Source: Girardia tigrina (Eukaryota). Taken from it: a stretch of 51,103 bases of DNA. The notes under the pieces were generated by a model. It did not search any database and was not told where the DNA came from. It saw only the letters and a program-made list of their open reading frames with translations. The DNA lies in assembly GCA_001938485.1 (NCBI GenBank), contig MQRK01178639.1, forward strand, positions 1-51,103, in the 5' to 3' direction. The position numbers were made by a program, and so were the translations under genes. Each line of letters opens with the position of its first letter. Position 1 is the first letter of the stretch. Positions 418-28,049 of this stretch are shown here, in pieces.

Positions 418-2738
418 AAGACTGTATCAGCATGCCGAGATTAGACAACTTCGATTGGAGATAGTGAGAAAACTCGCTCTGATTGGTCAAAATAAGAAAG
501 TAAAAATCGAATAAAAGGAAAAGTGAATTAATCACTTTTTTCATGATTATTAGTTTTTAGAAAAAAAGGCTCTCAATTCGATTTTTCATGATATGATATT
601 CTATTGTATTTGTGCTTTATGTTTTTCAATTTGATTGTCGTTTCATATGAGAAATTTTTATGAGAGCGAATTTTTTTTAATCGAAATTATGCATTGTGAT
701 TTGTCGATATGTGATCAGACGATTCGAATAATTAATTGGGAAATCAATTTCGTTCAGATTTTTTGATCATTTTTTTTGAAATTTGAATTTTATTGACAAT
801 TTTAAAATGATTTTTTTTGTAATTTGGAGAACTGTAAAACATTTTTTGTTCGATTAAAAATTTCCAAACAGATATGTTTTTGAAATTTTTGTAGAACAAA
901 TACATCTTCTTGATTTAAATTGTTGTGGTGACAGTACCGATGATCGAAAAATTTTAAATCATGAATCCCTCGATAAATAAAAATAAATCAATTCAATGGG
1001 CCTAGCACAATGAAAATAATCCACTGCGTAACCCTGCTACCACCGTCTAATTCTCGGTTCAACTTGAGGGTCAAGCGGAATAATTACTATTGTTGTGCGT
1101 TACTTTAGTATTATTTACAGTAAACATACATGTATTATACGTGTTTTCGTGAATTATATTATTATATGTTAGCTTTATATTATTGCGTTTTCCAAAATAA
1201 AAAAATCAATAAAAAATTAATTAAAAAGTCAATATCGCTTATATTGATTGTTAGTAGCATTGATGTTATCTTCAATTTAAGAACTTGAAGTCATGGCCGT
1301 CATGATTTTTTATTAATGATATAACACTAATTAAAATAAATTTTCATATCCTTTTCTTTAAAAACCAACATTATTGTTGTTCTTTACTGTCCCCAGCTTG
1401 TCCCAGAGACTGACCAGAGGTGGCAGATTTATAGCGCTGGATTCGCTGTGGTTCTTGCTTGACCCATCTAAATATGTTGTTAATAGTATTCTTGTTCGGT
1501 TCATTATCATTTTTAAATAATCTAACGTGTAAATAATTCAAATTTTAAAAATGTAATTAACGTTCTGCTTTTCCTATAATTAGTAAATAAGATAATTATA
1601 TTTAATTTTAAATAATCTAAAATCTAAAAAGTAAATAATTCTAATAAATAAAACAGAAATTGATCATAAATTGAAAAGGTGAATTGAGAAACAGTAAAAT
1701 ATTACTTGTTTGAACTAAAAATAATATCATAAATTTGTACAAATTCATTTAAAATGTAAAATACTGTAAATTTTTTAGCGCTTTTTTTGTTTATTGCAAT
1801 AATTCATTTTTTTAAAAGATAATGACACAAATTATTTTTTGAGACCAGTACGGCTTGAGGTCGGACTCATGAACTACGACAATGAACATAAAAATAAGAA
1901 AGAAAATAACAAGATTTTACAAAAACTCGTTCATGTAAAAACATAAAATAAAAATATCTTTAAAGTCTGAAAAGAAAAAGATAAGTTGAACAATTTATTT
2001 GAAAATAATAAAAATAAAACTAAATCGACAGAATTAATATAATTCATTTTAAAAACATCAAAACAAAAACGTTTTTCTCGCCATATTTTATATCAAAAAA
2101 AAATTTAAATAATTTTTTATTTTGAAATCAAATTTATAATTTTATGTTTACTTTTTAGTTTAAATGTTTTTGATTTTAAAAATTTTTTAAGGATTTATTT
2201 TCTTTAAAAAAATTTTTTAAACTTTTATTACAGAACAAATGTTAATTCGTAATTTGTCTCTATCAAATTATAGAAATAATTCATTATAATATATATATAT
2301 ATATATNNNNNNNNNNNNNNNNNNNNNNNNNNNNNNNNNNNNNNNNNNNNNNNNNNNNNNNNNNNNNNNNNNNNNNNNNNNNNNNNNNNNNNNNNNNNNN
2401 NNNNNNNNNNNNNNNNNNNNNNNNNNNNNNNNNNNNNNNNNNNNNNNNNNNNNNNNNNNNNNNNNNNNNNNNNNNNNNNNNNNNNNNNNNNNNNNNNNNN
2501 NNNNNNNNNNNNNNNNNNNNNNNNNNNNNNNNNNNNNNNNNNNNNNNNNNNNNNNNNNNNNNNNNNNNNNNNNNNNNNNNNNNNNNNNNNNNNNNNNNNN
2601 NNNNNNNNNNNNNNNNNNNNNNNNNNNNNNNNNNNNNNNNNNNNNNNNNNNNNNNNNNNNNNNNNNNNNNNNNNNNNNNNNNNNNNNNNNNNNNNNNNNN
2701 NNNNNNNNNNNNNNNNNNNNNNNNNNNNNNNNNNNNNN

Positions 2739-4700
2739 AAATGTTTTTCGTTTTAAAAATTTATTGTGGATTTATTTTCTTTAAATAACTTTTATTTCAG
2801 AACAAATTTTAATTCCTAATTTATCTGTATAAATTGTAGAAATAATTCGTTAAATTCTGATTGTTGGTAAATAAAATTAATAATATTAAAAAAGGAATTA
2901 AATATAACTTTTAAAAGGAAATTAACAAATTTATTTTTAGAGAACATTTTTTATTTTTTACAATAATTATATTAACTCACTTCCTATAAATATTTATATC
3001 ACAAATTATTTAAACGACTTTTCACCAACTTCAAATTGTCAAAATAAATTTTATATATATAAATGAATTGTTTATTTTACTAAAATATTCTGTCTTCTTT
3101 TAAACACAAGTAAAATCTTTCTTACAAAATGACATAAAAATAAATTTTGTAGCATATTTTAAATTTACATTTATTTTTTACATAAACACAGCGATTATTT
3201 TTTTATTAATGTAATAAAATTGTACATTGTTAATCACTGGTCGAAGAGGGTACCCAATCGTCCATGCCGCATGTACAGCGGTCAACGACCACAGAATTCG
3301 TGATCGGAGGATGACGGTAAAACATTCGAAATATTTTTTCCTGAAATATATTTTAAAATAGCGTGTTTTTTTGTTTAAAATACATTTTTAATGATTAAAA
3401 TTTGTTTTATTAATATAATTTAACATTAAATAACTTTGAATACTAAAATGAAATTTTATCAATTTTTGATATTTTTCTGTGGTTTTTTATTTTCGCAAGT
3501 CGCTAATTCGAGGATTGTAAGAAATGATAATATAGAAGAAGGCAATGGCCAGCTGCAAGAGGATGTAAAAGAACGTTTTCCCAGACATGCGGAACATTTT
3601 ACTAACAAAGCGAAATTCGAATTGAAAGAAGCATTTCCAATCGATTTGTATACTGGAGTGAAGTTCAAACTGACGTATGACCCTGTGGACTATGATAACA
3701 AGGACGTTGTGTTTGTACTGGCCATCACGGAGAATAATGTATTAAAGTCGTCTGTCATTATCGATTCCACAAGGATCAAGTATGAATTCATTGATGAGAT
3801 ATTTACTGTCGTTGAAGAACAGCGATCTAAATTCTCTTTTGAAGGAAGATTACAATTTTCACGCATTTGTAATCACTCAATTTTCACGGTCTTTTATTTC
3901 TCGAAAAGAAATCCTTTAATTGAAGACAGATTCTATTTTGGTCGCCCCGATTATCGCGCTCCTCTGCGGGGCCTTTCGACAACTGACATAATATTTACTT
4001 ATTTCAGAGAGAACTTCCTTCAGTTCAAGGATTACACCATTTATAATAATCTCATCGAACTCGATGATTCTAATCTGTTTTCGAAAATTATTTTCTTAAT
4101 ACAAACGGACAGTGTGACACAAATAATAACTTTTATGCTCCTGGCCGCTGTTGTGGGACTATTTATCTTCATTATATCGTATTTCGCTTCACATTTTCGA
4201 CATAATAATAAGAAGAAGAAGAACGAGCAACAAGAAAATAAAGTTTAGTAAATCTTCAGCATTAAAGAAAATAAATTTTGTATATTTTATTAATAAAACC
4301 TTTTGAAATTGAATTCAGACTTTTGTATATTACTTTATCATTGTATCTATTTTTCAAAAATTAAAATTCATTTGCTATTTGTTCCATTTATAATAGGAAC
4401 ATTTACTCCTAATGGAAATGTAATTCCATGGGGTCAATTCCTTATTGTAGTAAAATCGAGGAAGTCCCGAAAAAGGCACAAAGGTTTTCGGTCGATCTGT
4501 TCAAACTTGGTATTCGTATATATTAAAATTCGTACACGTAATATTCTTTCTGTTTTTGTAACCACTTTTTTGATTGTAGAATGAAATTCAATATTTAAAG
4601 AGATTTAATGCGAATAATGCAAATTATTTAACAATTTAGTTTGTTTGAATATTGAGAATTTAGTAAATGCGGGTTAATTATTGATTTATCTGTGTGATAA
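2739..4700 (+). repeat. Left arm of a ~2 kb inverted duplication (partner ~12185-14127)
   Basis: 2739-3969 is the reverse complement of 12897-14127 with no difference seen by eye; 3970-~4700 is homologous to ~12185-12896 but diverged. Confidence 0.9.
3448..4248 (+). CDS. Orphan type I membrane protein, copy 1 (266 aa from the first ATG)
   Basis: Intact intronless ORF with signal peptide MKFYQFLIFFCGFLFSQVANS, a beta-rich ectodomain with an NHS sequon, TM segment IITFMLLAAVVGLFIFIISYF and basic tail RHNNKKKK. Two paralogues in the window have identical length. Confidence 0.85.
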   Translation: MKFYQFLIFFCGFLFSQVANSRIVRNDNIEEGNGQLQEDVKERFPRHAEHFTNKAKFELKEAFPIDLYTGVKFKLTYDPVDYDNKDVVFVLAITENNVLKSSVIIDSTRIKYEFIDEIFTVVEEQRSKFSFEGRLQFSRICNHSIFTVFYFSKRNPLIEDRFYFGRPDYRAPLRGLSTTDIIFTYFRENFLQFKDYTIYNNLIELDDSNLFSKIIFLIQTDSVTQIITFMLLAAVVGLFIFIISYFASHFRHNNKKKKNEQQENKV

Positions 4701-5774
4701 ACAAATTGCGTGTTTTAGTAATAAAAATATATTATTTGTCTCATGTACGGTTTTTGAAGCTATGTCAATACCGACGGAGTCTGTTTTAAAGATGACAATT
4801 TTTATGTTATTTTAGTCTGGATTTGTAAAAAAAATATAGCAAAAATTTTGATATTTGTTTCAATTGATGAGGCTGCTGCAAAATTGGTCAAGTTTGAGGA
4901 TAGTTCGAAACTTGCTGACAATTTAAAATAGAAACCTTGCATAAAGTTCAAATTTATCTGTTTGTAAGGCTTAAAATATATAACACTACAAAAATTATAA
5001 AAAAATATAATAGTAAAGCATTTTCAAAACATTTTAACCCTAATGGGACCGAAACTATTTCCTTTAGAAAAAATGAATTTTTGATATTAATTCTGGTTTA
5101 TTATATCTAAATAACTTGTTCTACATTAAAAAATAAACTGATGAGTTCAAACTCGTGACTCATATATACAAAGACTATTGCACCTAATGCCGCCTGTTGC
5201 CGAACTTCTTCGTCTGTTGTGTCTTTATCAAACAGACTCTTTATCTTCAAAATCTTTCTGTGTTGAATCAATTTTCACAGACATTAAAATTATATAAATT
5301 CAAAACGTTGACCTTGCTAGGCAATTCAGTTAAACAAATTAACATTTTTTTTAGTGTGAATTAAATTCACATTTGAAATGAATTTTGTTTCATTTCAATT
5401 TGAATTGACCAATTGGGTCACGTTGTGAATGTAATTTCATTGGGTGTGTTTAAAATGAAAGTAAAGAATTCATGTGTGTGTTGTGTGAAAGTTACACAAT
5501 CACAATTTTTAATGTCTGAAAATTTTTCACTATTGGTTTTTTTGATTTAATAAAGAATAAAAGAATTCGTGACGGCATTTAAAATTAATAAATTCATTTT
5601 TTACAAGTGTTTTGGAAATCATTATTTCTTATATGTGATATAAGAAAACGAATAAATATAAATCGATAATAATGTTTATCAAATCATCAATGAAAATTAT
5701 TGATATTGCCAAATCTGTGATTAAATTTAAAAAATCAGGCTCAAAAGGTCATAGATTTCAGCAACAAATTCGAT

Positions 5775-6610
5775 ATGGGCGTGCAGATATTCATTTTGAA
5801 TTTGAGTAGAGCCCATCAAGTAATCGACCAAATCGAAAGAAACTCTCCAACGGTAATCGCACATTTCGATATTAAAGACGGTCATTTGGTCAAGAAAATC
5901 TATTTAAAATCAAGTAAATTTATTGTCGACTCAGACAGTGATGATTCGCTCGTTGAATCGAGTTCCGATAAATCCGATCGGAAATTATCGAGAAATAACT
6001 CGAATGAAATCAAAGCATCTTCATCGATCCTTCCTGACAACCGAATCAAATCTCAATCAAATCAAATCGATAAACCGCGTCGGAGAACGATCAACGAATT
6101 TCTATTGGAAACGAGCACTATATGCGATTTGAAGTCGGCAATCGAACAATATTTGGCGACAAAATTGTGGAAGAGCTTGTTTCGAATTGTCGCTTTGATT
6201 CGCACACGGAGAAATTATGTAATTGTGATATTCAGTGCCAAGAAACTCGCCAACAGTTATCTACACTATATTCGTGTGATAGATGTGATTCCAGTTAATA
6301 ATGAAACTAAAATCAGTGACGATCTAACTCGATCCAGTAGCGGCGCGATACAACAAGTAGTCTTAAACGGTGAAGATTTTTCTCTAAATCAATTCGATTC
6401 GATTTCAAATCCAATTGATTCTCAACACCCAATCAATCAATCGAATATGAAAGAATATCATTTAAGCTTCAAGGAAAACGAAGTCTTTACAAGTTTGAAT
6501 TGGCTGCAAAAATTGAGGGATGAAGCGGAATCATCGTCCGAACAGTCATTCGAACCAAAATTATCAGAATCTAATTATGATTTACGAAAACCCTCTGCTG
6601 AGATACAACA
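5775..6610 (+). CDS. Orphan coding exon, Ser/Asn-rich, product unknown
   Basis: 279-codon open frame in very AT-rich DNA. It ends at CA|GTAAGT (6611), a consensus donor, so the TAA is probably intronic. Confidence 0.55.
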
Positions 6611-6639
6611 GTAAGTGCTTTGGTTTAATTTGGCAACGT

Positions 6640-7270
6640 CAACATTCTTCAACTGATTCTTCAACTACTTTTATTTTAACGGTAAGCATTATATCATTCA
6701 TATCAATGTATTCATCTTCACTACCGATAATATCAAACTCTATATGAGATTTATTATACCCACTACATTTATCTGATCCTCTACATTCTTAATCTCGTGT
6801 ATCATTTTGATCTTTTCTTTTATTTGTTCTACTCCTTTTACATTATTCATCCGAACTTCTTTCTTGATATCCCTGTCATCACAACAGTTCATTAATAATG
6901 TTTCCATTATGCTTTCTTTGGACATGTTATGTTGCAAAATTCTTTCTGTCATCTTTTCTATTTTTTCGAAAAAAAACTTCAGGTATATCATCTTTCATCC
7001 TTTACCGGCATGGTTCCGACCAATCTTCAAATAGCGAAGATGTCCTCCCAAATGCTTTTCGAAGTCGATTTTTATAACTACATATCGACTTGTCAACGGT
7101 CTTATACTTTTCCTTCATGTCTCTTTCCAACAGACACAGGACAATCACGTCTTGTTTTGCTTTTGCCATTCCCGCGAATTGGAAAAATGTTTCATATTCT
7201 TCTATGAACGTCTCCACATTGTCACCTTTCCTGAATTTTTCAGGAAGTAATTGTTTCGGGAAGTTATCCA
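6640..7270 (-). mobile_element. Degenerate Ty3/gypsy gag fragment
   Basis: PEKFRKGDNVETFIEEYETFF...RLRKAF resembles the gag N-termini at 29345-29884 and 42700-42942; frameshifted. Confidence 0.65.
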
Positions 7271-7509
7271 AATAAATAAAATAAATAATTGCTGTTAAAG
7301 TGATTAATAATTTTAATAATAATGCAATTCTTTTTTCCAACAAAATTAATTAGGAAATATTAAAAATATACACAAATAATGCATGGACTAAACAACAATT
7401 GAATATAACTTGAACGACTTTTTATAACAAAACTCTGTTTATAAAATTAACGCAATATTTTGAACGAAAAATATATTTCACTACAAATATTTTTTATTTA
7501 CAAAACATC

Positions 7510-7900
7510 TTTCTTTTCGACCAAAATTGATCGTCTTTAAGACCACTGCTGGTCTAAAATATTGATTGATTGATTGCAGGTTCAATCTCCAAAATGTTGA
7601 AGTATCTGCAAAGAAATTGGAATGGAGTGATTTCATTATTTATTAAACAATATTTGAGCTCGGAAGAGAAATTTGAAAGAATATTAGGATCACGTTGTCT
7701 AGTTCTTTCAAGTTCATTTCTTATACGCAAACTAACAAGTCTCATAGGATTGCATCAATAATGTTGCTCTCAGTTTCAGTGAAAACCCATGGATTGTCAT
7801 GATGAACCCAAAATTTCATCTTTTGTTTCTTGTTGAAGGTCTCGGAGAAATTGTTGGTCAAGATCGTGGAATTGAACTATTTGATTATTGCGAGATCAAT
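7510..7900 (-). mobile_element. Degenerate MULE transposase C-terminal fragment
   Basis: Minus-strand translation LTNNFSETFN...HDNPWVF matches the TNNxxExF/HxNxWxF pattern. Confidence 0.45.
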
Positions 7901-8483
7901 TAACCGTGTCCTTTCAAATTAGAGATGAAAAGAGGCTATTTTTGTTTGTTGTTGTGGAGTTCCGATCCTTTTTTGTTTCAATGTACTAAATAATGTACGT
8001 GTTCGAGAATATAAAAGGTTAAATTAAAAAATTTTAAAAGTTTGAGAAATTTTGTCTATTAGTTAATCGAGTTTTTTTTGTAAATGTAAATTTTTTTGTA
8101 AATTATAAAATTTAGAAAAATGAAAATTAATTAAATTAATAAACTTTTGAATTTAGAAATTTTATGTTTGTGGTTAATTTAGTTTTTTAGTAATTATAAA
8201 AATGTATAAAAAATATTATTATGATGGTTAAGATTATTAAATTATGTCAAGAAAAATGTAAATTTTATGGATGAGTTTTAATAAATCAGTTTGTATAGGG
8301 ATTTCAGAACTAATAAAATTTTATTGAGATATCGATTTCTTTCATATATTCATTAACTGAAATTGAAATGCCTAATTTAAAAGAACAGATAACTTTGCCA
8401 TTTGACTATATTTTTAATGTGGATTATTTTATGAAGATATTCGAAGATTGAATATAACTAATTGAATATAAGAAATTGACAAA

Positions 8484-8793
8484 ATTTCAGTACCTATTAA
8501 AAATTGTGAAGACATTCATGATCAATGGAATGAATTAATGAGAATATTCCAAAATTGTGGAAAATCATCAACTTACAGATATTTATTTCTTATGGATTAT
8601 GTTGACTGCGGTTCTTATTCATTGGAAACAGATATATTTATTGTGTAAGATTATCAAGTGATAGACATTTATTTCTTGGGGATTATGTTGACTGCGGTTC
8701 TTATTCATTTGAAACTATATGTGTGTTGTTTGCTTACAAAATTAAATATCTATATAGAATATATTTATCACGCAGAAATCACGAATCTAAAAG
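8484..8793 (+). pseudogene. Ser/Thr protein phosphatase (PP1-like) catalytic subunit pseudogene fragment
   Basis: CEDIHDQ (cf. GDIHGQ), [10 protein letters not shown] (cf. GDYVDRG) and [13 protein letters not shown]...LSRRNHE (cf. RGNHE); catalytic motifs are mutated and there is an internal duplication. Confidence 0.85.
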
Positions 8794-9759
8794 CAGAACG
8801 AGAAGCGAGTTGTTGAACTCTGGGCATGGCTGCGCGCTCAAATTGCCGCTCTGCGATCAGTACGTATTTTATCAGAGGGCAAAAATCCAAGCGCCATTAT
8901 CAAATTTATCAGCTAGTTAAATTCTTTATTGCGAATGAAAAACTTTTTCAGGCCAAGTTCGCCAATTTTCCTTACAATGGCCTGCTTAAAATGAAAATAG
9001 TAGCCTTGACAGGTAATCTGTGAAAATATTTCACGAAATACTCTACTCAGCTTTTTTCAAAGTCACCAATTTCCAACTAAGACAAAAATTGATGTGTTAG
9101 GGTTTCGAAAAATACATATGAACACTTTTGATAACATTTTATGTAAAAAAAATTTTCAAATAATTCTTTTAGTAAAATTATTAATTTCAAACAAAATAAT
9201 ATTTAGTTTAACAAAATTTGGAATTTAAAATTAAAAATATTTTAGTCTTTGTTTTAATTGATCAATTTTCAAGGCTGATGAAAATAACTATATAAACAGT
9301 AGCAAATTTAGTTTAGTTTGTCCAAAAATATTTGCTGAAAAATTCGCCTAAGAAGAGTTCACGTAAACAAGTAAAGCGAATATCAAATTTTTTTTATTTT
9401 ATCCTTTAAAATATTGTTTTATTAAAGAAACCATAAGTATCCCGTATGGGAGAAAAAGATTTTTGAATTTAAAGTTTTAATCAAATCATCGTTGGTTTTT
9501 GGAGATTCACAGTCTTTACTGTAATCTGTTAACTCGTACAAAATATTGATTTGTGTTTGTGTTCTGTCATCAAGAATTGAATTAATATTATTATTTTCGA
9601 CTTGTTAATTGTGTTATTTGAAATAAAGCTTCATAAAAGATTTTGTGTTCATAGTCTATATATTTATGTTGGAAGTCTTTTCTGATTAATTGGAGCCAGA
9701 TTAAAGATTAAAGAATAAAGATTTGTGTTTTAAAAATAAATAATTATATTAAAGATAAT

Positions 9760-10270
9760 TTAATATCCAACAGATGTATCATATCTTTTATTTTTGAATA
9801 ACGAACTTGTAATGTTGATATTGCCTAGATTTCATAAAGACAAAAAATGTTGGCAAAATTCCATGTCGAAATGAAATAATGAACAACTGATAAAATTTTT
9901 TTGCACAATAAAAAATGTCCCATCATAACAGATGCTATCAAAATTTGGGAGACTATCAACCATTTCACTTGAAAAGAAAAAGATTCTAATGACTTCATCG
10001 CCATCAAATATTGGTTTTTTTTTATTGATTTTTCTGATATTGTTTCGGACAAATAATTTCTTTTAGTTCCTTCTTCAGTGCTCTCATTGGTTCTTCATAT
10101 AGTTTATGGTTCGTGGTTATGGCAGGTTTCAATAATAATTTCATTGGTATCAATCTTTAGCGAAATTAATTATTTAGTGACATTAATTCTTTGCTGAAAT
10201 TAAATCTTTTATTTATGAAAATTAAATCTTTAGTGAATTTAGTTCTTTAGCAAAATTACTTCCGCAACCC
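9760..10270 (-). mobile_element. MULE transposase N-terminal remnant with a repeat-rich terminus
   Basis: Minus strand reads ICYDGTF then, frameshifted, KFYQLFII; tandem tctttagYgaaatt motifs at 10155-10260 end in ccgcaacc. Confidence 0.5.
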
Positions 10271-10273
10271 AAT

Positions 10274-11060
10274 CTACGAAGAGTATAACAATTGTGAAAG
10301 AAGTTCAAAAGTGTGGTACGAAGTAGATAACGCCACTTCAAAAACCGATGAAAGTATTGCGCTAGTGAACAGATCAGTGACTGAAAATAGCCACATATAT
10401 TGTCGAGCGAAAGAAGATATTACTGGAATAACTAAAACCTTTGTTAACAGAATTATCACCTAATAATTTGTCTTAACAAACTTTACTTCAAAATGGTTTA
10501 CTTTTCAGCTGTCAGAGAACACAGAATAAATAGTGTTGAAATTTGTTAAGAATTACAAAATACTTTTTAGAAAGAGTCAAGGAGAGATTGTAAGTTTGTG
10601 ATAAGAAGTAAATTATATAAAGTCATTTTCATCTCAAAACACAGTGTGAAAATAGATAATGGTTGATGGTTATGAGGAAACTTAAAAACCGATAGTAATG
10701 CAAAAATTGTGATTATTTTAGCAGTGAATTCTATTGGCTCTGAAATTGGATTTTATATTGAAATATTGAAAGATGCTGGTCGATAAATACTGACAGATAC
10801 ATTCTTTTCCTTAAAACATTTTAAACAAGAACGTTTTATAAACATTGAACGTGACTTATGGATATATGATAATGTAAGCCTCATATAAGAGGCGCTTCAG
10901 TTAATTTTATCCTAAATTTATTAGTGTCTCAAAGTCCATATTCTCCAAATTTGAATGACCGATATATTTTTCGGAACAAGCAATCGCAAACCTTGATGAG
11001 TTGAAGGTTTATTTGAATGATGTTACGAATGGCCTTACAACTTCCCCCCTGAACAACCAT
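10274..11060 (+). mobile_element. Decayed mariner transposase
   Basis: SKWFTFQLS (cf. WVPHEL), IYDNV (cf. HDNA) and PYSPNLND (cf. YSPDLAP); many stops. Confidence 0.6.
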
Positions 11061-11067
11061 TTAACTG

Positions 11068-11644
11068 TTTACTACAAGACATTTAGAAAATTGTTAGGGT
11101 CAAAATGTTAATCTGAAATAAATATACAATTAAATGGCTCATTATGTGTACAATTTGATACCGATAATTCACCATAATAAATGATATATAATGTTTCACA
11201 AAGCACTGCCCCAATAATTATATAGAGCCGATCATTTGAAAATTAGATAAATTTATGTTCTATTAAATGATTTTATGTTCCAAATATTACTTGCCCTTCT
11301 CTTTCAGGCGATTTGTCTGTATGGTGCGAAGTCTCTCCTGTGCATATAGGGTTATATTAATGAGCAATTAATTCATTTTCATTTCGCTGATCGAGATTTA
11401 AATAATTGAAAACTTAAAACAAATTTACAAAATATTTAATCTAAGAAAAATTTAAATATTTAAAATTAAGGTGAAATTAAATAATATTTTTACTTTTCGA
11501 AAGATAGTAAATTAACGAAAAATAATTATTTTAAAATAAAGATTTACTACAAGACATTTAGAAAATTGTTAGGGTCAAAATGTTAATCTGAAATAAATAT
11601 ACAATTAAATGGCTCATTATGTGTACAATTTGATACCGATAATT
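11068..11644 (+). repeat. 102-bp exact direct repeat (11068-11169 and 11543-11644)
   Basis: tttactacaagacatttag...tgataccgataatt occurs twice. Confidence 0.9.
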
Positions 11645-11708
11645 GAAGGTATTAAAATATTGTTTTTGGGATTCGAATTTTCTGAGTTACAAATCATAAA
11701 AAAACAGA

Positions 11709-12114
11709 ACGAATGTTATACTGCCCCCATATGTTATGTAATCTGTATAGATTATATTATTTCTTTTCGAATTAGAGGAATAACTGGTGGAATGGATGAA
11801 TAAAATTGTTAATTAATTAATAAAAAATGAAATAATTAATTATTAATTAATTGAAATTCAATCAAATCAAATTTAATTAAATCAATGAAATCAAATTTAA
11901 TAATTTAATTATGATTATTATTAAATTAAATTAATAAAAAAATAAATAAAATAATTAATTAAAATTTATTTATAAAATAAATTAAATTAATTAATTAAAA
12001 TAAATTAAATTAATTATTATTAATATATTAATAAAGAATTAATTAAATAATTAATCTTAAAGAATATATAAATCTTCACAGATTACATAATATGTGGGGC
12101 AGTATAACAGTCGT
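11709..12114. mobile_element. Foldback/MITE-like element with ~50-bp inverted termini and an almost pure A/T core
   Basis: acgaatgttatactgcccccatatgttatgtaatctgt at the left end matches the reverse complement of acagattacataatatgtggggcagtataacagtcgt at the right end. Confidence 0.7.
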
Positions 12115-12617
12115 ACCTAAAAAACGAAATAATATGCTGGACAATCTATAAAATTTTTTGAAAGTGCTTTAATATTATAATTTTTATCACACAGATAAAT
12201 TAACAATTAACCCGCGTTTACTAAATTCTCAATATTCAAACAAACTAAATTGTTAAATAATTTGCATTATTCGCATTAAATCCCTTTAAATGTTGAATTT
12301 CATTCTACAATCAAAACAGTGGTTACAAAACCAGAAAGAATATTACGTGTACGAATTCAAGTTTGAACAGATCGACGAAAAACCATTTTGACTTTTTCTG
12401 GACTTCCTCGATACTACAATAAAGAATTGACCCCATGGAATTATACTTTCAGAGGGTTGATACAATTACAGGTAAATGTTTCTATTATAAATGGAAAAAC
12501 GAGCAAATGAATTTCAATTTTTGAAAAATAGATACAATGATATAAAAAAGTATGTATTCAATTTCAAAAAGTTTTATTTATAATATATACATTTTTTCTT
12601 ATAATGTTGAAGATATA

Positions 12618-13418
12618 CTAAACTTTATTTTCTTGTTGTTCGTTCTTCTTCTTATTATTATTATGTCGAAAATGTAAAGTGAAATACGATATAATGAAGA
12701 TAAATAGTCCCACAACAGCGACCACGACAAAAAAAGTAATAACTTGTACCTCGTCGTTTGTTTTAATCAGGAAAATAATTTTCGAAAACAGATTAGAATC
12801 ATCGAGTTCAATGAGAGTATTATAAATGGTGTAATCCTTGAACTGAAGGAAGTTCTTTCTGAAATAAGTAAATATTATGTCAGTTGTCGAAAGGCTCCGC
12901 AGAGGAGCGCGATAATCGGGGCGACCAAAATAGAATCTGTCTTCAATTAAAGGATTTCTTTTCGAGAAATAAAAGACCGTGAAAATTGAGTGATTACAAA
13001 TGCGTGAAAATTGTAATCTTCCTTCAAAAGAGAATTTAGATCGCTGTTCTTCAACGACAGTAAATATCTCATCAATGAATTCATACTTGATCCTTGTGGA
13101 ATCGATAATGACAGACGACTTTAATACATTATTCTCCGTGATGGCCAGTACAAACACAACGTCCTTGTTATCATAGTCCACAGGGTCATACGTCAGTTTG
13201 AACTTCACTCCAGTATACAAATCGATTGGAAATGCTTCTTTCAATTCGAATTTCGCTTTGTTAGTAAAATGTTCCGCATGTCTGGGAAAACGTTCTTTTA
13301 CATCCTCTTGCAGCTGGCCATTGCCTTCTTCTATATTATCATTTCTTACAATCCTCGAATTAGCGACTTGCGAAAATAAAAAACCACAGAAAAATATCAA
13401 AAATTGATAAAATTTCAT
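12618..13418 (-). CDS. Orphan type I membrane protein, copy 2
   Basis: Intact ORF, identical to copy 1 up to ...RAPLR, then ~16 aa differences. Confidence 0.85.
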   Translation of the reverse strand: MKFYQFLIFFCGFLFSQVANSRIVRNDNIEEGNGQLQEDVKERFPRHAEHFTNKAKFELKEAFPIDLYTGVKFKLTYDPVDYDNKDVVFVLAITENNVLKSSVIIDSTRIKYEFIDEIFTVVEEQRSKFSFEGRLQFSRICNHSIFTVFYFSKRNPLIEDRFYFGRPDYRAPLRSLSTTDIIFTYFRKNFLQFKDYTIYNTLIELDDSNLFSKIIFLIKTNDEVQVITFFVVVAVVGLFIFIISYFTLHFRHNNNKKKNEQQENKV

Positions 13419-14493
13419 TTTAGTATTCAAAGTTATTTAATGTTAAATTATATTAATAAAACAAATTTTAATCATTAAAAATGTATTTTAAACAAAAAAA
13501 CACGCTATTTTAAAATATATTTCAGGAAAAAATATTTCGAATGTTTTACCGTCATCCTCCGATCACGAATTCTGTGGTCGTTGACCGCTGTACATGCGGC
13601 ATGGACGATTGGGTACCCTCTTCGACCAGTGATTAACAATGTACAATTTTATTACATTAATAAAAAAATAATCGCTGTGTTTATGTAAAAAATAAATGTA
13701 AATTTAAAATATGCTACAAAATTTATTTTTATGTCATTTTGTAAGAAAGATTTTACTTGTGTTTAAAAGAAGACAGAATATTTTAGTAAAATAAACAATT
13801 CATTTATATATATAAAATTTATTTTGACAATTTGAAGTTGGTGAAAAGTCGTTTAAATAATTTGTGATATAAATATTTATAGGAAGTGAGTTAATATAAT
13901 TATTGTAAAAAATAAAAAATGTTCTCTAAAAATAAATTTGTTAATTTCCTTTTAAAAGTTATATTTAATTCCTTTTTTAATATTATTAATTTTATTTACC
14001 AACAATCAGAATTTAACGAATTATTTCTACAATTTATACAGATAAATTAGGAATTAAAATTTGTTCTGAAATAAAAGTTATTTAAAGAAAATAAATCCAC
14101 AATAAATTTTTAAAACGAAAAACATTTNNNNNNNNNNNNNNNNNNNNNNNNNNNNNNNNNNNNNNNNNNNNNNNNNNNNNNNNNNNNNNNNNNNNNNNNN
14201 NNNNNNNNNNNNNNNNNNNNNNNNNNNNNNNNNNNNNNNNNNNNNNNNNNNNNNNNNNNNNNNNNNNNNNNNNNNNNNNNNNNNNNNNNNNNNNNNNNNN
14301 NNNNNNNNNNNNNNNNNNNNNNNNNNNNNNNNNNNNNNNNNNNNNNNNNNNNNNNNNNNNNNNNNNNNNNNNNNNNNNNNNNNNNNNNNNNNNNNNNNNN
14401 NNNNNNNNNNNNNNNNNNNNNNNNNNNNNNNNNNNNNNNNNNNNNNNNNNNNNNNNNNNNNNNNNNNNNNNNNNNNNNNNNNNNNNNNNNNNN

Positions 14494-15365
14494 ATTATAA
14501 TTTATTTAATTATATATTTTAAAAAGTATATTTTATGAAACAAACAATAAAATAATATGTAAATGTTTTTTAATTTAATTTTTTTAGAAAACAAATAATT
14601 AAATTTTTAAAAAATGTTACGACTAATTTTAATGATAAAATTTCTTAAAAAATATCGAAATAATCTAAAATTTTATTAAAAGAAATAAACAGCAATTTTA
14701 TCAATTTCTGTTTTTTGTCACAAGTTTCCTTTTCCCAGTTATATTTAATTCCTTTTTTGATATTATTAATTTTATTTACTAACAATCAGAATTTAATGAA
14801 TTATTTCTATAATTTGATGGAGACAAATTACTAAAATAATCTCTGGCAATAAATGCAAATAAGAAAATTAAATTAAATTGTTATTTAAAATTATTCAACT
14901 AATTATTAATTAATTATTTTTGATTATTTAAAATTACAGAAATAATTTCAACATTAAAAAATATTTTTTTAAATATATGTTATACTTATTTTTACCTATT
15001 TTATAATATATGTTATTAAAAATACAATTATACAATTATTTATTTATAAACCGATTTTTATTAAAAATATTTTTATTGAATAATGAAAGATATAAAAACT
15101 AAAGAAATTAATGACGATATTAAAAATTAATTCAATTATTTTTGTAGTTCGTTTCTTTTTGTTCGTCGTCTTCTTATGTTTCCAATATTTAAATAAAATT
15201 ATATTTTTAGTTATTATATACTTAAATAAATCTTTAATGGAATAAATAATTGAATAATATGTAAATGTTTTTTATATTATTTTTTCAGAAAACAAATAAT
15301 TAAATTTTTAAAAAAATTTTTCGAATAATTTTAATGCTAAAATTTGTTACAAATATCGAAATAAC
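14494..15365 (+). repeat. AT-rich segmental duplicates of the family's upstream region (match ~19905-20455 and ~13960-14050)
   Basis: 14494-14710 is nearly identical to 20237-20455; 14870-15365 is similar to 19910-20405. Confidence 0.7.
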
Positions 15366-17000
15366 TTGTTAAGAATTCAAATTTAATTATTATATTTATT
15401 ATCGTATATATATTAATTTATATCATTTCTGTGGCGATCCATTCCGTCTCATGAACAATCAACATCCTAATAGATCAAAGAACTTTAAAAAATATTGAAA
15501 AATCTTCCTCGAAAAGTACACGAAATTCTGTTGGTCAAGCAGAGTTCTGACCGCAGAATGAATACATTTTTTTATTTATTATTAGTACTTCTCAAAATTT
15601 GCATAATGATTTTTACTTTTTTAAGTTTCTGTAACATTTTTCAGTGAGAAAAATTTCTAAAATATAAATAAAGTCAAAAAAGGATTCTGTAATTTTTAAT
15701 CTAAAGACGCCATCAATGCCTAAATCCAAAAAGACAACGTTGAGACTAAATGGCAAAAGATTAGTGGTTTTCTTAATGGGATATTTTAATTTTTGTAATA
15801 TTTTTTGTTTCGTGAAATAATCTTGAAATGTTTAATTTGGAATCGTTGGTGACTTCAACAAGGAGACTCTTCCTATTTTTAACTAACAATAAACGTAATG
15901 ATAATAATCTTTTTATGTTTCAGGTGAAATCGATTTTTTCATAAATAAATCAACCAATACTTTTTTCACGGAGTGCCAAGGTAAATTGAAATCAGAACAA
16001 GGGGTAAAGAACTGATCCTCTGGGAAATGGAAGTCTTCCCTTCACCCAGATCCACATCATTCTGTATTCACGTAAAAGAAGTCAGTATATCGGATCGACG
16101 GATGTAGCGTTGCCCAAAATCGATTAGAAATTGTTTCGGCAATGCGAAATATTTGATTCGTATTCAAAGACAAAGCAATGAAAAAAAAGAGAGATTTCTA
16201 TCGATGGAGTTTCGTTAATTTAAGAAGTCAAAAAAAGATTCCAATCAAGCTCAGGTTGTCACAAAGTCCGTCTTTCGATTTTCCAACAAATATATCCATA
16301 ACCGCACCTCAAAATATTCAGTTACATCGCTCGAGATAGTAAATCAACTACTTTTAAATGCAATGTGTTAAATGCTTTAATTAAATTGGAAGCAATGAAA
16401 AGAATTAAATGTTTGTCATAGAATCAATCAAAAATGTAAAGAAACAAGGAAAACCAAAATTCAAGTAAGAATTCTTTTTTCCACGAAAATAAAGTATCCA
16501 CTTCTTAATCTCCTCAACCGATTCTACCTGCCGATCTCATAAAAATTGATGAAGCTGAAAGTAATTCTTAATCCGAATCTTAATCTACTTTAGATGAGTT
16601 AATTATGCAAAGTTACATTAAAAAGAAGGAAAAGGATGTGCGAAATTCAATCAATAAACCAAACATAAAATTACATTATAATAGTCTGAATGAAGACAAA
16701 AACGTAGTGCATATGTGGAGCATTGCTTGCTTATTTATATTTAGAGGAAAGAGACAAAATTCTTTGAATAAAACTTTTGTTCATACCATTGATGTTGCGG
16801 TAAGACCAGTAACTGTCTGTATCCTTCTGTTTCATATCTTCCACCAAATCATTTTACAGGAATGGGAGATTGTTATCATTCTCCATTTATGTAGAAAAAA
16901 TTGATATTTTAATGAATAGACATCATGAAACATAAGAATGGTTTTATATGATATTTATCTTTGAATATTAAAAAGATGTCATTTACATATCTTTAATACG

Positions 17001-17820
17001 GTATCCCGACAAAAACGCCAACGACAACAGCGCCCACCGACAAATGCGTCCCGAAAAAAGCGCTCATTTTTGAATTTTTATTTAAATTCTTAACAGAAGT
17101 AATTCTTAAATGAATTAATTTTGAGAGTCAAAAAAACTTTTTAACAAGAAAAATAGTTTAAAAATAGTACCAATGTTTCCATTAATCGTTTGGAATATGT
17201 TTGGTAGAGTTAATGGTGACTTGCCGTGTATAAATAATTCAGTTGAAGGTTGGCATAGAGCATTTCAACAAACCGTGAAGTACCACCATCTCTCAATTTT
17301 TAAAATAGTGGAACATTTTAAAAAAGAACAAAATCAAATAGAAATAGAATATGAACGTTTTCAAGTCGGATTTCGACAACCAGAAGCTTTGAAAAATAAA
17401 TATGTAAGCCTAAACAAACGGATAAAAAAATTAACAGAAAATTATATTATATATTATCTTAAGCGATAGTCGGATAATCTGGAAATATAATATAATATGT
17501 TATCTTTTTATTTTTTTTCATTGTATTACTTTTATTTTTAACATTTTGTTACTTTTGTTATTGTTGCAGTTTTGCAAGTCGTTAGGCGTTATTATTTATA
17601 TTATCATTATATTGCTTAAATCCCAAATAATATAAGTTTTACAAAATTATTTTTATAAAAATTCAAAAAGTCCTTTCATATTTGGGATTTAAACAATATA
17701 ATAATAGTAGAAATAATGATGCTTTCTGTTAAGAATTTAAACAAAACGTTTTACAAAAATTTAAAAAAGTGAGCGCTGTTGTCAGGATGCCTCCGTCGGT
17801 GAGCGCTGTTGCCGGGTCAC
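17001..17820 (+). mobile_element. Internally deleted MULE element with TIRs
   Basis: ORF 17173-17469 (WNMFGRVNGDLPCINNSVEGWH...) is a MULE C-terminus; termini are inverted arrays of gacaacagcgc motifs. Confidence 0.75.
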
Positions 17821-18042
17821 TCTATCATACACAGATGACTGATTCCATTTGATTTTCAGTGAGTTGCGTGAAAATGGAAGTCATGTTGGAACAGGTGTAG
17901 AACCCATTGCGACACCGTCTTTTAGAATGAACCATTTTAAAAACAGATACAATGAGTAATTAATATAAAAAGCTCTATACAATTTCAAAAAGTTTTATTA
18001 ATAACATATACAAAATTTATTTTCTTTAATATTGAAGAAATA

Positions 18043-18843
18043 CTAAACTTTATTTTCTTGTTGTTCGTTCTTCTTATTATTATTATTATGTCGAAATTGT
18101 AAAGCGCAATACAATATTATGAAAATAAGTGATCCAACAACAGCGGCCACGAGTAAACCAATGATTATTTGTGCCACAACGTTCGTTTTTATTATGAAAA
18201 TAATATGTTTAGACAGATGAAAATCATTTAGTTCGATTAATGTATTATAAATCGTGTAATCGTTGAACACAAACCAGAATTCTCTGAAATAATGTACGAT
18301 TATTGGAGTTGTTTGTGAGAAATAGAGAGGAAGGCCATTTGCCTCTGCACCCATAGTCAGTCTTGCTTCGCTTAAAGGATTTCGTTTCGAGAAATAAAAG
18401 ACCGTGAAAATTGAGTGATTACAAAAGTCTGTAAATTGTATTCTTCCTTCAAAGGAGAATTTAGACCGCTGTTCTTCAACGACAGTAAATATTGGATTAA
18501 AGGAGTGATACTTGATCCCCGTGGAATCAATAACGGCAGACGATTGCCATTTCTTATCCTCCGTGATGGCCAATACAAACACAAGGTCCTTGTTATCATA
18601 ATCCACAGGGTCATACGTCAGTTTGAACTTCACTTCATCGTTAACATCAACTGGAAATACTTCTTTCAATTCGAATTTCGCTTTGTTAGTAAAATGTTCC
18701 GCATGTCTGGGAAAACGTTGTTTTACATCCCCTTGCAGCTGGCCATTGCCTTCTTCTATATTAACAATACTTACAATGCTCGAATTAGCGACTTGTGAAA
18801 ATAAAAAACCACAGAAAAATATCAAAAATTGATAAAATTTCAT
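18043..18843 (-). CDS. Orphan type I membrane protein, copy 3 (divergent variant)
   Basis: Intact ORF of the same length, ~71% aa identity to copy 1 by manual count; upstream ~700 bp nearly identical to the other copies. Confidence 0.85.
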   Translation of the reverse strand: MKFYQFLIFFCGFLFSQVANSSIVSIVNIEEGNGQLQGDVKQRFPRHAEHFTNKAKFELKEVFPVDVNDEVKFKLTYDPVDYDNKDLVFVLAITEDKKWQSSAVIDSTGIKYHSFNPIFTVVEEQRSKFSFEGRIQFTDFCNHSIFTVFYFSKRNPLSEARLTMGAEANGLPLYFSQTTPIIVHYFREFWFVFNDYTIYNTLIELNDFHLSKHIIFIIKTNVVAQIIIGLLVAAVVGSLIFIILYCALQFRHNNNNKKNEQQENKV

Positions 18844-20989
18844 TTTAGTATTCAAAGTTATTTAATGGTAAATGATATTTATAAAACAAATTTTAATCAT
18901 TAAAAATATATTTTAAACAAAAAAACACGCTATTTTAAAATATATTTCAGGAAAAAATATTTCGAATGTTTTACCGTCATCCTCCGATCACAAATTCTGT
19001 GGTCGTTGACCGCTGTACATGCGGCATGGACGATTGGGTACCCTCTTCGACCAGTGATTAACAATGTACAATTTTATAACATAGAAAAATAATCGCTGTG
19101 TATATGTAAAAAATAAATGTAAATTTAAAATATGCTACAAAATTTATTTTTATGTCATTTTGTAAGAAAGATTTTACTTGTGTTTAAAAGAAGACAGAAT
19201 ATTTTATTAAAATAAACAATTCATTTATATATATAAAATTTATTTTGACAATTTGAAGTTGGTGAAAAGTCGTTTAAATAATTTGTGATATAAATATTTA
19301 TAAGAAGTGAGTTAATATAATTATTGTAAAAAATAAAAAATGTTCTCTAAAAATAAATTTGTTAATTTCCTTTTAAAAGTTATATTTAATTCATTTTTTT
19401 AATATTATTAATTTTATTTACCAACAATTCGAATTTAACGAATTATTTCTACAATTTATACAGATAAATTAGGAATTAAAATTTGTTCTGAAATAAAAGT
19501 TATTTAAAGAAAATAAATCCACAATAAATTTTTAAAACGAAAAACATTTTAAGTAAAAAGTAAACATAAAATTGTAAATTTCGTTTCAAAATTTAAAACT
19601 ATTTAAACTTTTTTGATATAAAATATGGCGAGAAAAACGTTTTTGGTTTTTATAAAATGAATTATATTAATTTAGTTTTATTTTTTTCAATAAAATTGCT
19701 TAACTTAAGATTTATTTTCAGACTTAAAAGATATTTTAATTAAAATAATCATTTATGTAATTTACTAAATGTTTTATTTGAGATAAAATGTTTTCAGATG
19801 TTTGATCCACTGAGAGAACGAAACATTTCCTCAATATCCGTGGACGATTTGCCTGTGTTAAATTTCAGAAATGTCTCAAATAATCATTTACAATAAATAC
19901 AAATATGAAAATTAAATTAAATTGTTAATTAACACTATTAAAAACAAATTATTAATTAATTATTCTTGATTATTTAAAACTACAGATATAATTAAAAAAA
20001 TAACTTTATAAATATATACTAAACTTATTTATACCTAATTTATATTACATATGATTTCAAAAAAAAATATATATTATAATATCACATTATTCATAATTTT
20101 TTTAATTTTTATCAAAAATATTTTTTATTGAATAATGAAAGATATAAAAATTAAAAATTGAACGACGATATTTAAAAATTACTTCAATAATTTTTGTAGT
20201 TCGTTTCTTTTTGTTCGTCGTGCTTTTATATTTCAATTATAATTTATTTAATTATATATTTTAAAAAGTATATTTTATGAAACAAACAATAAAATAATAT
20301 GTAAATGTTTTTTAATTTAATTTTTTTAGAAAACAAATAATTAAATTTTTAAAATATGTTACGACTAATTTTAATGATAAAATTTCTTAAAAAATATCGA
20401 AATAATCTAAAATTTTATTAAAAGAAATAAACAGCAATTTTATCAATTTTTGTTTTTTATCTGGTTTATTTTTTCACTATTAACTTAATTGAGACTATTG
20501 GGTTCGTGATTAAAATCCGAAGTCATTATTCGCAAACTTTATTTCTACTACAACTTTCACTACTCAAACAAATTTATGAGGAACAATATTTCAGTTACAT
20601 AAACCAGATTTTAAAATTCTAAATATAAATAATAATATCGATGTATATTTATGTGTATTATTTTATTCAATTTTGCATAAATCATATTTTGCTTTTGTTT
20701 TAATAATTTTTAAAATGTTTATTAATTGAAATATAAATTTAGATCTTTAAAAATATTTTAATGGACATGTCCTGTAAAAATTAAATTCCTAAATAATTTT
20801 TTCTTTAATTTTAAATTATTCAATTATAATTTTTTTTAATAAGACTTTCCGTGGACAAAAATTATAACTTTTTTTTATATAAAGTTATTTCATTTTAATG
20901 AGTAGAACATTATTTTTAATTTATCTCAAATATAAATACGATTTTTAATTTAAAAATATCAAAAATTTACAGTTCACCAAAAAAAACTC

Positions 20990-21300
20990 CTAACAGAGAC
21001 AATTTTGAATATTTATTACTGTCACATTTAGGTCATTAAAACTCTCAGAAGATCTTTCACCGTTTGAAATTAGTTTTTTTATTTTTGTTTTTAATACTAA
21101 TTATTCAAACAATGTTCTAAATCTTTTTTTTTAATATTTAATTTATAAATTTAATAAATTAAAATAATAATTTTAACCATTTCTTTATCAAAACACAAAA
21201 TAATAAAAATGTTATCTGTAAAATCGTATCAATGAATTTGGACTAAAATTTAACCACAATTAATTAAACATTTATTTAATAACGACACTCAATTATTAAA
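20990..21300 (-). mobile_element. Partial LTR of the TGTGAGGAATATT family
   Basis: Reverse complement contains gaaagatcttctgagagttttaatgacc, as at 39832-39859. Confidence 0.6.
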
Positions 21301-21359
21301 ACAAATATATTTAGGATTTAATTAATATTTGAATTTTCACTAATTAAATCTTTTCTCGA

Positions 21360-22900
21360 CACTACAGCTTCTCCTTTCTTTAGGAGATGTAATCGCCTAG
21401 GTAGTTTGATGGCTTGCGTTTTCGTTTTCCGTCTGTTCCGTTCTCCATGATTTTTTCATTGTCATTCCGGTGGTGCTCGGTCTTCCGATTGTCCACTTTT
21501 TCTTTCTCTGGTTCTGGTTTTTTCACGAGTCTCAGTTTTCTGATGTTTATCCATCTGCAACTACGTTGGTTTTTCCTTTTATATATGAGACCGTGAAGTT
21601 ATATGATAAGAGCTTTGTAGCCCGCCTTGAGATTCTGCATGGTACCGTACCATATCCATTAATGACAGTTAGTAGTTGTCGTAAGCTTTGGTGGTCTGTT
21701 CTTACTTGAAATTTTTGTCCATAAAGAAATTCATTCAATCTCATGATGCTCCAGATGACGCTGAGTGCTTCTTTTTCTGATGCTGAGTATTTTCGTTCTG
21801 AATCATGAATAGTTCTGCTGATAAAGTAGATTGGTTTTTCAATCCCTTCTTGGATTTGGCTTAATGCTGCTCCAAACCCGTTGTCTGAGGCATCTGTTGT
21901 CAGTATAGTTTCTGTTTTCATATCTGTAGAGTAGAATGCTAGTGGTACTGCCTCTGAGATTGCTTGTTTCAACTTCTGAAATATTGCTTCCATTTCTTCT
22001 GTCCACTGGAACGTTATTTCTCTTCTCGTTAAATTATACAGTTCGCGTGATAATTCCGCGAATCCTGGAATGTTTAATCTATAGCAACCGACCATTCCTA
22101 GAAATGATGCGAGTTGTTGTTTAGTCTTTGGAGTTTCTAAATTAATAATAGCTTTCAACGCTTCTGGCACTGGATGTACTCCTGTTTTATTAATTAATCT
22201 TCCCAAAAAGACTATTTCTTCTTTCCGGTATAACGATTTCTCTTAATTAATTGTCACTCTTTTCGATTTCAGCCGAAAGTCGTTTCATTCAGTCATTTAT
22301 CATGCTCCTCCATATTTTTCCCGTTTACTAATATATCATCTAGATAACAGACGATGCCTTCACGATGTCTGAGGATGTTCGTCATTACCCTCATGAATGC
22401 TGCTGGGGCATTTGCTAGACCAAATGGAAGTCGCTTGTATCTGAATGAACCTATGTGCGTAATGAAGGCTGTCTTCTATTCTGATGGGTAGTTGATGCTA
22501 TGCTGAAGTGAGATCCACTATTGAGAATATTTGAGCTCCGTACAGCTTGTTGTGAATTTCTTCCTGAGTGAGTATTGGAAACTGATCGATTTTGATGTGT
22601 TGGTTTAATCTTCCTGTAATCGACACACAGTCGAATTCCGTTCTTCTTGTTTGCTATTACTATTGGTGATACGAATACTGATGACTTAATTGGCTCGATG
22701 ACATCTTATGCAATCAGTTTTCTTATCTCTTCAGTGACAGGTGCCTCCAAATTAAAAGGAAGTCTTCTGACTTTTTGTATGATTGAATGGGGTACATCTT
22801 CTTTCAGTTGTATTTAGACTTCTTGGTTCGACATCGATATTAGTTTATCCGTCAAGAAATTCTTCTCCATTTCATCGTTATTGATTGCTGCAATTTCCGG
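21360..22900 (-). mobile_element. Ty3/gypsy pol fragment (RT-RNase H), frameshifted
   Basis: VCYLDDILV near 22340; LASFLGMVGCYR, TTDASDNGFGA, YSASEKEAL, VRTDHQSL and KGKTNVVAD motifs. Confidence 0.9.
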
Positions 22901-22912
22901 GGTAATAGCTAT

Positions 22913-25260: not shown

Positions 25261-25567
25261 TTATTCAATTAACAAAATAATCACTAATTTGAGTACAAAA
25301 ATTCTAAAAAGCTGAATAAGTTTTTTTGTAATATTTATTTGAGATATATTTGCTCGAACAGAGATCATGAAGACGACACTGAGCAGAAGGAAAAGTCGTA
25401 TTAGTCAGTATTGTCCATTCCAAATGAGTCGTTGTACAAACAAATTGTTTTCTCAAGGTAAAATGACATGTAATTTTTCAATCTCCGGAAGTCCTTAAAA
25501 ACAATCAAAACATTTTGACTAGTTGTTTTTTGGGAAAACAATTTTTTCATAAATTTACTTTTCGAAA

Positions 25568-25795: not shown

Positions 25796-25843
25796 GTATA
25801 ATGAAATTGGTATCTTAATAGAATAATTAATTTGAACTTATAG

Positions 25844-28010: not shown

Positions 28011-28049
28011 ACAAAATCTGACATATTTTACAATTTTAAAATTTTTACA

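Follow-up and report, generated by a model that had tools for sequence, protein, structure and literature searches.

In invertebrates, recognition genes usually escape homology searches, and it is genetics alone that has uncovered them, as with Alr, fester, and PTC2/GRC. In Hydractinia, the Alr genes encode non-canonical V-set/I-set allorecognition proteins whose domain 1 carries an aromatic residue in place of the B-strand Cys, hydrophobic residues in place of the F-strand Cys and Trp, and Phe in the tyrosine corner (PMC9546547). [quoted passage not shown] The PTC2/GRC loci of the snail Biomphalaria are defined by alleles that diverge to an extreme degree and by parasite resistance mapped to them; paralogues there share less than 50% identity (PMC7494358, PMC4361660). 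By way of working, the Alr family and PTC2/GRC are the systems closest to a trio of genes that we analyzed in a 51,103-nt stretch of Girardia tigrina DNA (contig MQRK01178639.1, hereafter the window); the trio is a member of neither. As a whole, it is best explained, with a probability of roughly 0.5, as a small, fast-evolving, lineage-specific adhesion or recognition family of functional type I membrane glycoproteins.

Like the Alr genes, the trio consists of clustered genes for single-pass proteins of a kind that Pfam mostly misses and for which AlphaFold suggests an Ig fold, and threading by hand points to the same kinds of Cys, Trp, and tyrosine-corner substitution. Unlike them, each member is one open reading frame (ORF) with one tentative domain, no salt-bridge pair, a 16-amino-acid (aa) tail, and pLDDT below 70. 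A further mark of the Alr family is homophilic binding in trans that is specific to the allele. The Alr architecture of Ig domains, Fn3-like extracellular spacer (ECS), and transmembrane (TM) helix with an exon per domain is not seen in the trio, and no sequence similarity was detected among the 5.8 billion proteins and 1.84 billion representatives searched. With PTC2/GRC the trio shares clustered, lineage-restricted, single-pass TM genes that lack known domains and lie in DNA rich in transposable elements (TEs). However, no homology to PTC2/GRC was detected, and the trio paralogues, known here from one window, are 71%–94% identical.

The three genes are copy A (3448–4248, plus strand), copy B (12618–13418, minus strand), and copy C (18043–18843, minus strand). 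As the first-pass annotation had claimed, each translates to 266 aa followed by a stop, and each is apparently intronless in the sense of one continuous ORF. Copy B is 94% identical to A, with all 28 nt differences in codons 175–260, and C, on the contig beyond an assembly gap, is 71% identical to both. None of the copies contains an N, and none of 3000 shuffled versions of the coding sequence (CDS) was free of stops; the opposite strand of the loci holds shorter, broken ORFs only. The GC content of the three ORFs is 34%–35% against 20%–25% in their setting, and AATAAA lies within 45 nt 3′ of the stop in each copy. A tblastn search of the 51,103-nt window found no fourth intact copy.

In copy A, the segments on the plus strand are the signal (aa 1–21, 3448–3510), the beta domain (aa 55–165, 3610–3942), the TM segment (aa 223–250, 4114–4197), and the tail (4198–4245). 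The signal peptide was called by eye from a hydrophobic N-terminal segment (aa 1–21) that is invariant in all three copies. A single strong hydrophobic helix at approximately aa 223–250 (KD19 maximum 2.9–3.1) is also a helix in the AlphaFold (AF2) models, and basic residues follow it. Hydropathy, charge bias, and the modelled helix support a predicted single-pass or anchored surface topology, in agreement with the signal peptide and single TM helix of the earlier description. The copies conserve a sequon at N142 and have one ectodomain Cys (C141), and Trp is absent from A and B. The beta-rich ectodomain of approximately 200 aa that had been proposed stands in part: a beta domain is predicted, but it appears to be confined to about aa 55–153 (perhaps to 165), with aa 33–53 and 178–193 modelled as helices.

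Copies A and C are substituted at 141 of 798 sites and still have the same length and no stop, and random placement of the same substitutions leaves the frame open in 0.1%–0.2% of trials (neutral P 0.001–0.002). In the flanks, indels occur at approximately one for every six substitutions. The CDS pairs show no net indel, the aligner perhaps placing compensating gaps in the most diverged CDS patch. Because the frame has been kept open at equal length despite 141 substitutions, beside indel-rich flanks, we conclude that the three ORFs are genes under selection. The pairwise ratio of nonsynonymous to synonymous rates (dN/dS) is 0.81 for A-C and 0.69 for B-C, with 0.7–0.9 for the ectodomain, and the TM segment and stalk diverge as fast as the ectodomain (0.9). 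In no partition tested was dN/dS significantly above 1, which leaves positive selection without significant support.

No relative of these proteins was found. Neither copy A nor an alignment of the beta domain matched any of the 5.8 billion proteins, and the 1.84 billion representative proteins, searched with no length limit, gave no true match. The sole match there (P0001, E 1e-19) was rejected as a 14-fold tandem repeat translation with a score summed from 25-bit pieces. Metagenome, viral, and prokaryotic contigs contained no relative, an exact-sequence look-up was blank, PDB sequences gave no match, and Pfam, NCBIfam, and PHROGs assigned no family, returning weak matches to TM composition only. 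The searched collections seem to lack the host's own proteins, and orphan here means orphan outside its lineage; in the planarian literature, we found no description of such a family. The earlier statement that no family could be recognized therefore holds for every database searched, and a clear match to a housekeeping protein or a TE envelope protein, named beforehand as the finding that would speak against the first-pass annotation, did not appear. Together with selection on the frame, this bears out the part of that annotation that saw a lineage-specific, orphan type I membrane family.

The ectodomain fold was approached with two AlphaFold runs on three-sequence alignments, one full-length and one of the ectodomain (mean pLDDT 43; beta domain 44–68). 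Both models place eight strands at aa 55–153, an N-terminal helix at aa 33–53, and a helix at aa 178–193; a V-frame is a Greek key of nine strands that include C″ and G, and the G strand was not modelled. Foldseek against the PDB gave TM-scores of 0.40–0.49 over 90–110 residues (E 7e-4 to 7e-3). Antibody, T-cell receptor (TCR, including TCR delta), CD8 (including CD8 alpha), or VSIG4-type entries made up all 50 matches listed for the full-length model and 47 of the 50 listed for the ectodomain model. This structural comparison, which had been proposed as a check of the first-pass annotation, thus puts the beta domain nearest to Ig V entries, but from models of pLDDT 43 and with TM-scores below 0.5. 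The domain is tentatively Ig V-like, and we keep the call tentative because the match scores are low and the PDB is crowded with antibody domains.

The Cys-Trp-Cys pin that V-set domains carry on strands B, C, and F is absent, as the single ectodomain Cys and the lack of Trp in A and B imply. In our threading by hand, Tyr77 and Val148 presumably occupy the Cys positions and F146 the tyrosine-corner position, and the spacing is what we take to be V-set-like, with G70 seven residues before Y77 and 71 residues from Y77 to V148. The V-set Arg75-Asp98 salt bridge is presumably missing, with Asn142 at the Asp position and no conserved basic residue before the D strand. Because the pin and the salt bridge are absent, we do not file the trio as a V-set member, although it may function in the same way. 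Both models find their best structural matches in surface proteins with a single V domain (CD8 alpha, VSIG4/CRIg, TCR, and antibody V), which have a similar single-pass layout. The trio differs from them in its TM-score below 0.5, the lack of the pin, an extra N-terminal helix and a helical stalk, and variation that falls on the loops opposite those equivalent to complementarity-determining regions (CDRs).

This last difference emerged when the A-C differences were mapped on the predicted strands: of the 19 residues in loops 1, 3, 5, and 7, 13 are changed, against none of the 16 in loops 2, 4, 6, and 8. In any antiparallel domain, successive loops alternate between the two ends. In the even loops, the proportion of nonsynonymous differences (pN) is 0/36 and that of synonymous differences (pS) is 4/12 (Fisher p = 0.003), and strands and even loops together give pN 0.06 against pS 0.17 (p = 0.015). 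Since four changes in the invariant loops are synonymous and none is nonsynonymous, the loops have been kept by selection and not by conversion. On the V-set reading, the invariant pole would be the CDR side (BC, C′C″, DE, and FG loops), a pattern opposite to that of variant antigens and antigen receptors. Mainly because the invariant loops would be the CDR-equivalents, we rank a role in adhesion or as a ligand with a constant partner above a variant system.

Under the adhesion explanation, the signal peptide would direct secretion, the N142 sequon would carry an N-glycan, and a single TM helix would anchor the protein. It would display one beta-sandwich, most likely an Ig V-like domain of non-canonical, cysteine-free type. 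With its invariant pole it would bind, at an unchanging site, a conserved partner in the matrix or on another cell. The other pole, like aa 158–194, would be under weak constraint, differing between paralogues and possibly tuning specificity.

Several observations weigh against this explanation. The AF2 models, built from a three-sequence alignment, are of poor quality (pLDDT 43 on average and 44–68 in the beta domain), and the Foldseek matches have TM-scores below 0.5 and E near 1e-3 in a PDB crowded with antibody domains. No Ig family was matched in Pfam up to E 10 by the whole protein, the ectodomain, or the beta domain, and none was found in PDB sequences. The alternation of loops comes, in effect, from a single pairwise comparison; its P is ~0.03 when it is counted as four of eight loops, and a null model of circular shifts reproduces it in 8 of 102 placements (P ~0.03–0.08). 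Finally, the chain topology could place the variable pole away from the membrane.

The first-pass annotation had taken the trio for a variant surface antigen or other diversified cell-surface system, a claim that is not supported so far. The window holds two distinct ectodomains, dN/dS is 0.7–0.9 overall and in the variable patches about 1, never significantly more, the loops that would face outward on the V-set reading are invariant, and the tail and TM segment carry no signalling motif. A free-living flatworm host would also fit antigenic variation poorly. The trio does resemble parasite variant antigens (var, rif/stevor, vsg, and vsp) in that a variable ectodomain is framed by a signal, a tail, and an upstream region that are conserved, and in gene conversion among copies. 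However, the parasite families number from tens to thousands of copies, with exposed tips under positive selection and with demonstrated exclusive expression, while the trio has three copies and possible remnants in the window and no significant positive selection.

It is possible, though doubtful, that the trio is, in line with that annotation, a diversified recognition system in which the variable pole and aa 158–194 form an exposed hypervariable surface under diversifying selection, serving the recognition of pathogens, self/non-self, or gametes, perhaps with identical promoters from which each cell selects one copy. The A-C differences are strongly clustered (59 runs, P < 5e-5), changes in the variable patches are radical, and transversions outnumber transitions by 88:53. 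Immune multigene families, too, typically combine a divergent core with a signal, a tail, and a promoter that are conserved. Moreover, pN exceeds pS in the odd loops (0.38 vs 0.24) and in aa 158–194 (0.47 vs 0.42), but this excess is not significant (p = 0.47–0.82), and dN/dS in the variable patches, about 1–1.5, is not significantly above 1. Analogues exist in snail PTC2/GRC (PMC7494358) and Hydractinia Alr (PMC9546547). On the other side stand the two ectodomain types in the window, the lack of ITAM/ITIM and of charged TM residues, and a TM segment and stalk that evolve as fast as the ectodomain, which resembles general relaxation.

The C-terminal tail has 16 residues, the last eight of which are invariant in all three copies, in agreement with the conserved short tail that had been described. 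Canonical PDZ ligands of classes I, II, and III have S/T, a hydrophobic residue, or D/E at position -2 and a hydrophobic C-terminus. As position -2 is Asn in all three copies, the tail is not a canonical ligand of these classes and the suggestion of a PDZ-type end was not borne out, though atypical binding may occur. Tyr-based motifs, ITAM/ITIM, dilysine (KKxx), and FF signals are absent from the tail, and no charged residue lies within the TM segment. Because the tail has no Tyr motifs and the TM segment no charged residues, the protein would act as an adhesion molecule or ligand and not as a self-signalling receptor. The invariant end with its terminal Val may be an endoplasmic reticulum (ER)-export signal or a docking site for a fixed partner.

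The 5′ flanks are 98%–100% identical among the copies, against 82% for the CDS. Between A and C, the 705-nt 5′ flank is 1.8% diverged, while in unchanged codons the synonymous sites are 16% diverged (p = 3e-9), and divergence at such sites climbs from 3% in codons 1–60 to 30% in codons 158–250. The simplest reading of these gradients is that promoter and 5′ end were recently homogenized, by conversion or recombination, onto older coding regions; the homogenized part would comprise the promoter, the signal peptide, and the start of the ectodomain. With near-identical promoters, all copies are predicted to be expressed in the same cell type. Approximately 120–210 nt upstream of the ATG of A (3237–3325, plus strand) lies an island of 53% GC, surrounded by flanking sequence of 20% GC. 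The same island lies upstream of B (13541–13629, minus strand) and, with one substitution, upstream of C (18966–19054, minus strand). It is a candidate promoter core or 5′ untranslated exon. A noncoding RNA was rejected, as the island has no Rfam match and its folding is not unusual (z -0.8 and -0.4), and splicing of the island, as a coding exon, to the T-rich region of the signal was likewise rejected, since the required phase has a stop and no AG lies between the upstream in-frame stop and the ATG. On the opposite strand of the island (3237–3325, minus strand, and the copies upstream of B and C), there is a 31-codon ORF with a C-x-C end and an acceptor-like site before it.

Copies A and B sit in the arms of an inverted duplication. 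The left arm (2739–4701, plus strand) comprises 5′ flank, gene, and 453 nt of 3′ flank and begins at the edge of a gap at 2307–2738; the right arm (12183–14127, minus strand) ends at the edge of the gap at 14128–14493, at the same base where the left arm begins. The homologous C unit (17935–19549, minus strand) has a 5′ flank 98.2% identical to that of A and a 3′ flank of approximately 86%. Its homology to A and B stops at 17935, adjoining a small element directly 3′ of C (approximately 17000–17840) with inverted terminal similarity, noted by eye. An ORF end at 17125–17466 is transposase-like and apparently Mutator-like; it has no Pfam match. We propose that the family expanded by local tandem and inverted duplication.

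The gap at 14128–14493 lies 709 nt upstream of the ATG of B and, with runs of N mapped, is crossed by no reading frame and lies outside every ORF. A and B share the contig 2739–14127, and C is on the next (14494–28558), so the order and orientation of C relative to A and B rest on scaffolding only. The first 226 nt to the right of the gap are 98.7% identical to 20236–20461, upstream of C, which agrees with the upstream region of B continuing across the gap, but homologous anchors are spaced 686 nt apart at C against a gap estimate of 366 nt at B, so that continuity is no more than plausible. A diverged copy (80%–89%) of the far-upstream region of the unit lies left of the gap at 2307–2738 (1947–2286, plus strand). 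A probable decayed gene-start remnant (approximately -119 to +65, with the ATG lost) occupies 20303–20493 on the plus strand (alignment score 109 vs a shuffle maximum of 87), and a second, doubtful one at 14561–14770 on the plus strand scores 87, inside the shuffle range. Decayed 3′ gene remnants near 15170 and 20220 were rejected, their scores also falling inside the shuffle range.

A and B are 100% identical over 1231 nt, from the contig edges 709 nt upstream through codon 174, so the window contains two ectodomain types (A/B and C) and not three. The contig thus starts and ends with the same 1231 nt, inverted and stopping at the same base, which may reflect either recent conversion between the arms or one collapsed unitig placed twice. 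A partial assembly artefact, in which a single unitig stands for the 5′ half of both A and B and one copy may be chimeric or truncated in the real genome, would account for identity that ends at the same base at both contig edges, and yet we consider it very improbable. Two 3′ ends exist, differing by the 28 nt in codons 175–260 and by 8% and six indels in the 3′ flank. Collapse itself presupposes near-identity, and the real 5′ parts of A and B must be near-identical under either collapse or conversion. Copy C is independent (1.8% different in the flank), and an artefact would affect the copy count and not the reality of the family.

The inverted arms also bear on the idea that the trio are passenger or envelope-like genes carried by a mobile element or an endogenous virus and copied along with it, A and B marking its long inverted arms. 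The genes are intronless and lie in TE-rich DNA, and the 2-kb inverted arms of A and B resemble each other most closely at their outer ends. The viral structure library gave nothing at E up to 1e-3, its top rows being epsilonretrovirus env (E 1.4e-3 and 3.5e-3) and herpes and pox membrane proteins, and the env matches have a TM-score of 0.06 and a root-mean-square deviation above 12. This origin is improbable, considering in addition that no relative occurs in viral contigs or the 1.84 billion representatives, that there is no furin site, fusion peptide, or cysteine pattern, and that no trio gene stands in env position relative to any pol, with no pol upstream in env order. Copy C is moreover a solitary unit, and the arms carry no transposase.

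The window is approximately 28% GC and full of retroelement and transposon remains, and the host appears to be an animal with a large genome rich in TEs. The earlier claim that almost everything around the trio has decayed is right for most of it, which is TE debris, but not for an intact 279-codon ORF between A and B (5775–6614, plus strand) and exons of a p24/TMED gene (32738–34787, plus strand). The former ends at a GTAAGT donor-like site, has no Pfam, NCBIfam, PHROG, exact-sequence, or viral-contig match, and may be a large exon or a TE ORF1. The p24 exons, searched individually, are a GOLD-like one near 32738–32896 (by eye) and a C-terminal one at 34533–34787 (EMP24_GP25L, E 2e-6). This gene may be broken or use another splice site, as the obvious acceptor at approximately 34511 gives no open frame.

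With a true p24 gene 14 kb away, the trio might be thought an intracellular single-pass protein of the secretory pathway, a cargo receptor or chaperone-like protein that works like p24/GOLD proteins or L-type lectins and has diverged past recognition. In size and segment order it is similar to p24/TMED (EMP24_GP25L), and we take the layout of signal, beta domain, helical stalk, TM helix, and short Val-ending tail to be p24-like. Even so, this is quite improbable. The trio has no EMP24_GP25L match up to E 10, though the neighboring 70-aa p24 exon was detected at 2e-6, and no GOLD structure is among the Foldseek matches listed. It also lacks the GOLD disulphide, having one ectodomain Cys, and any COPI/COPII tail motif (no KKxx or FF), and its fast evolution, with dN/dS near 0.8, is unlike that of housekeeping genes.

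A mutated 18S rRNA fragment (33795–34270, minus strand; approximately model positions 1160–1690) lies between the two p24 exons and is apparently intronic. Its sequence seems bilaterian, with triclad flatworms the probable nearest likeness. A degenerate ubiquitin-like ORF (48852–49142, plus strand; E 1e-22) has substitutions at normally invariant sites and is probably a pseudogene. Between A and B lie a broken gag-like remnant (6743–7349, minus strand; by eye) and a miniature inverted-repeat element (11725–12099) with 29-nt arms (11725–11753 and 12071–12099) and an extremely AT-rich core. Penelope-like fragments (reverse transcriptase [RT] and GIY-YIG-type), recognized by eye and without a Pfam match at 1e-3 for the pieces scanned, occur at 22920–25250 (minus strand), 26563–26845, 35099–35569, and 50384–50617. 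Remains of Ty3/gypsy-type gag, protease, RT, and RNase H lie on the minus strand at 21547–22705, 40270–42616, and 29345–30010; the gag at 41933–42616 has 61% identical relatives in metagenome contigs L001–L006. Exact direct duplicates of 102 nt (11068–11169 and 11543–11644) and 83 nt (45063–45145 and 45196–45278) are also present, the latter flanking a gap of N and probably representing an assembly overlap.

Should the trio be no more than a rapidly evolving adhesion protein, it would join the many orphan families of membrane proteins that animal genomes contain. It is unlikely that the genes form a single-exon germline receptor family built on a cysteine-free V-like Ig domain, diversified opposite the CDR pole and expressed from identical promoters with one copy per cell, for self/non-self, pathogen, or gamete recognition. 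If true, that receptor reading would amount to an independent origin of a variable Ig-like recognition system. As it stands, a functional single-pass family that is an orphan, may have a non-canonical Ig fold, and shows sharply bipolar constraint is a concrete, testable recognition candidate.

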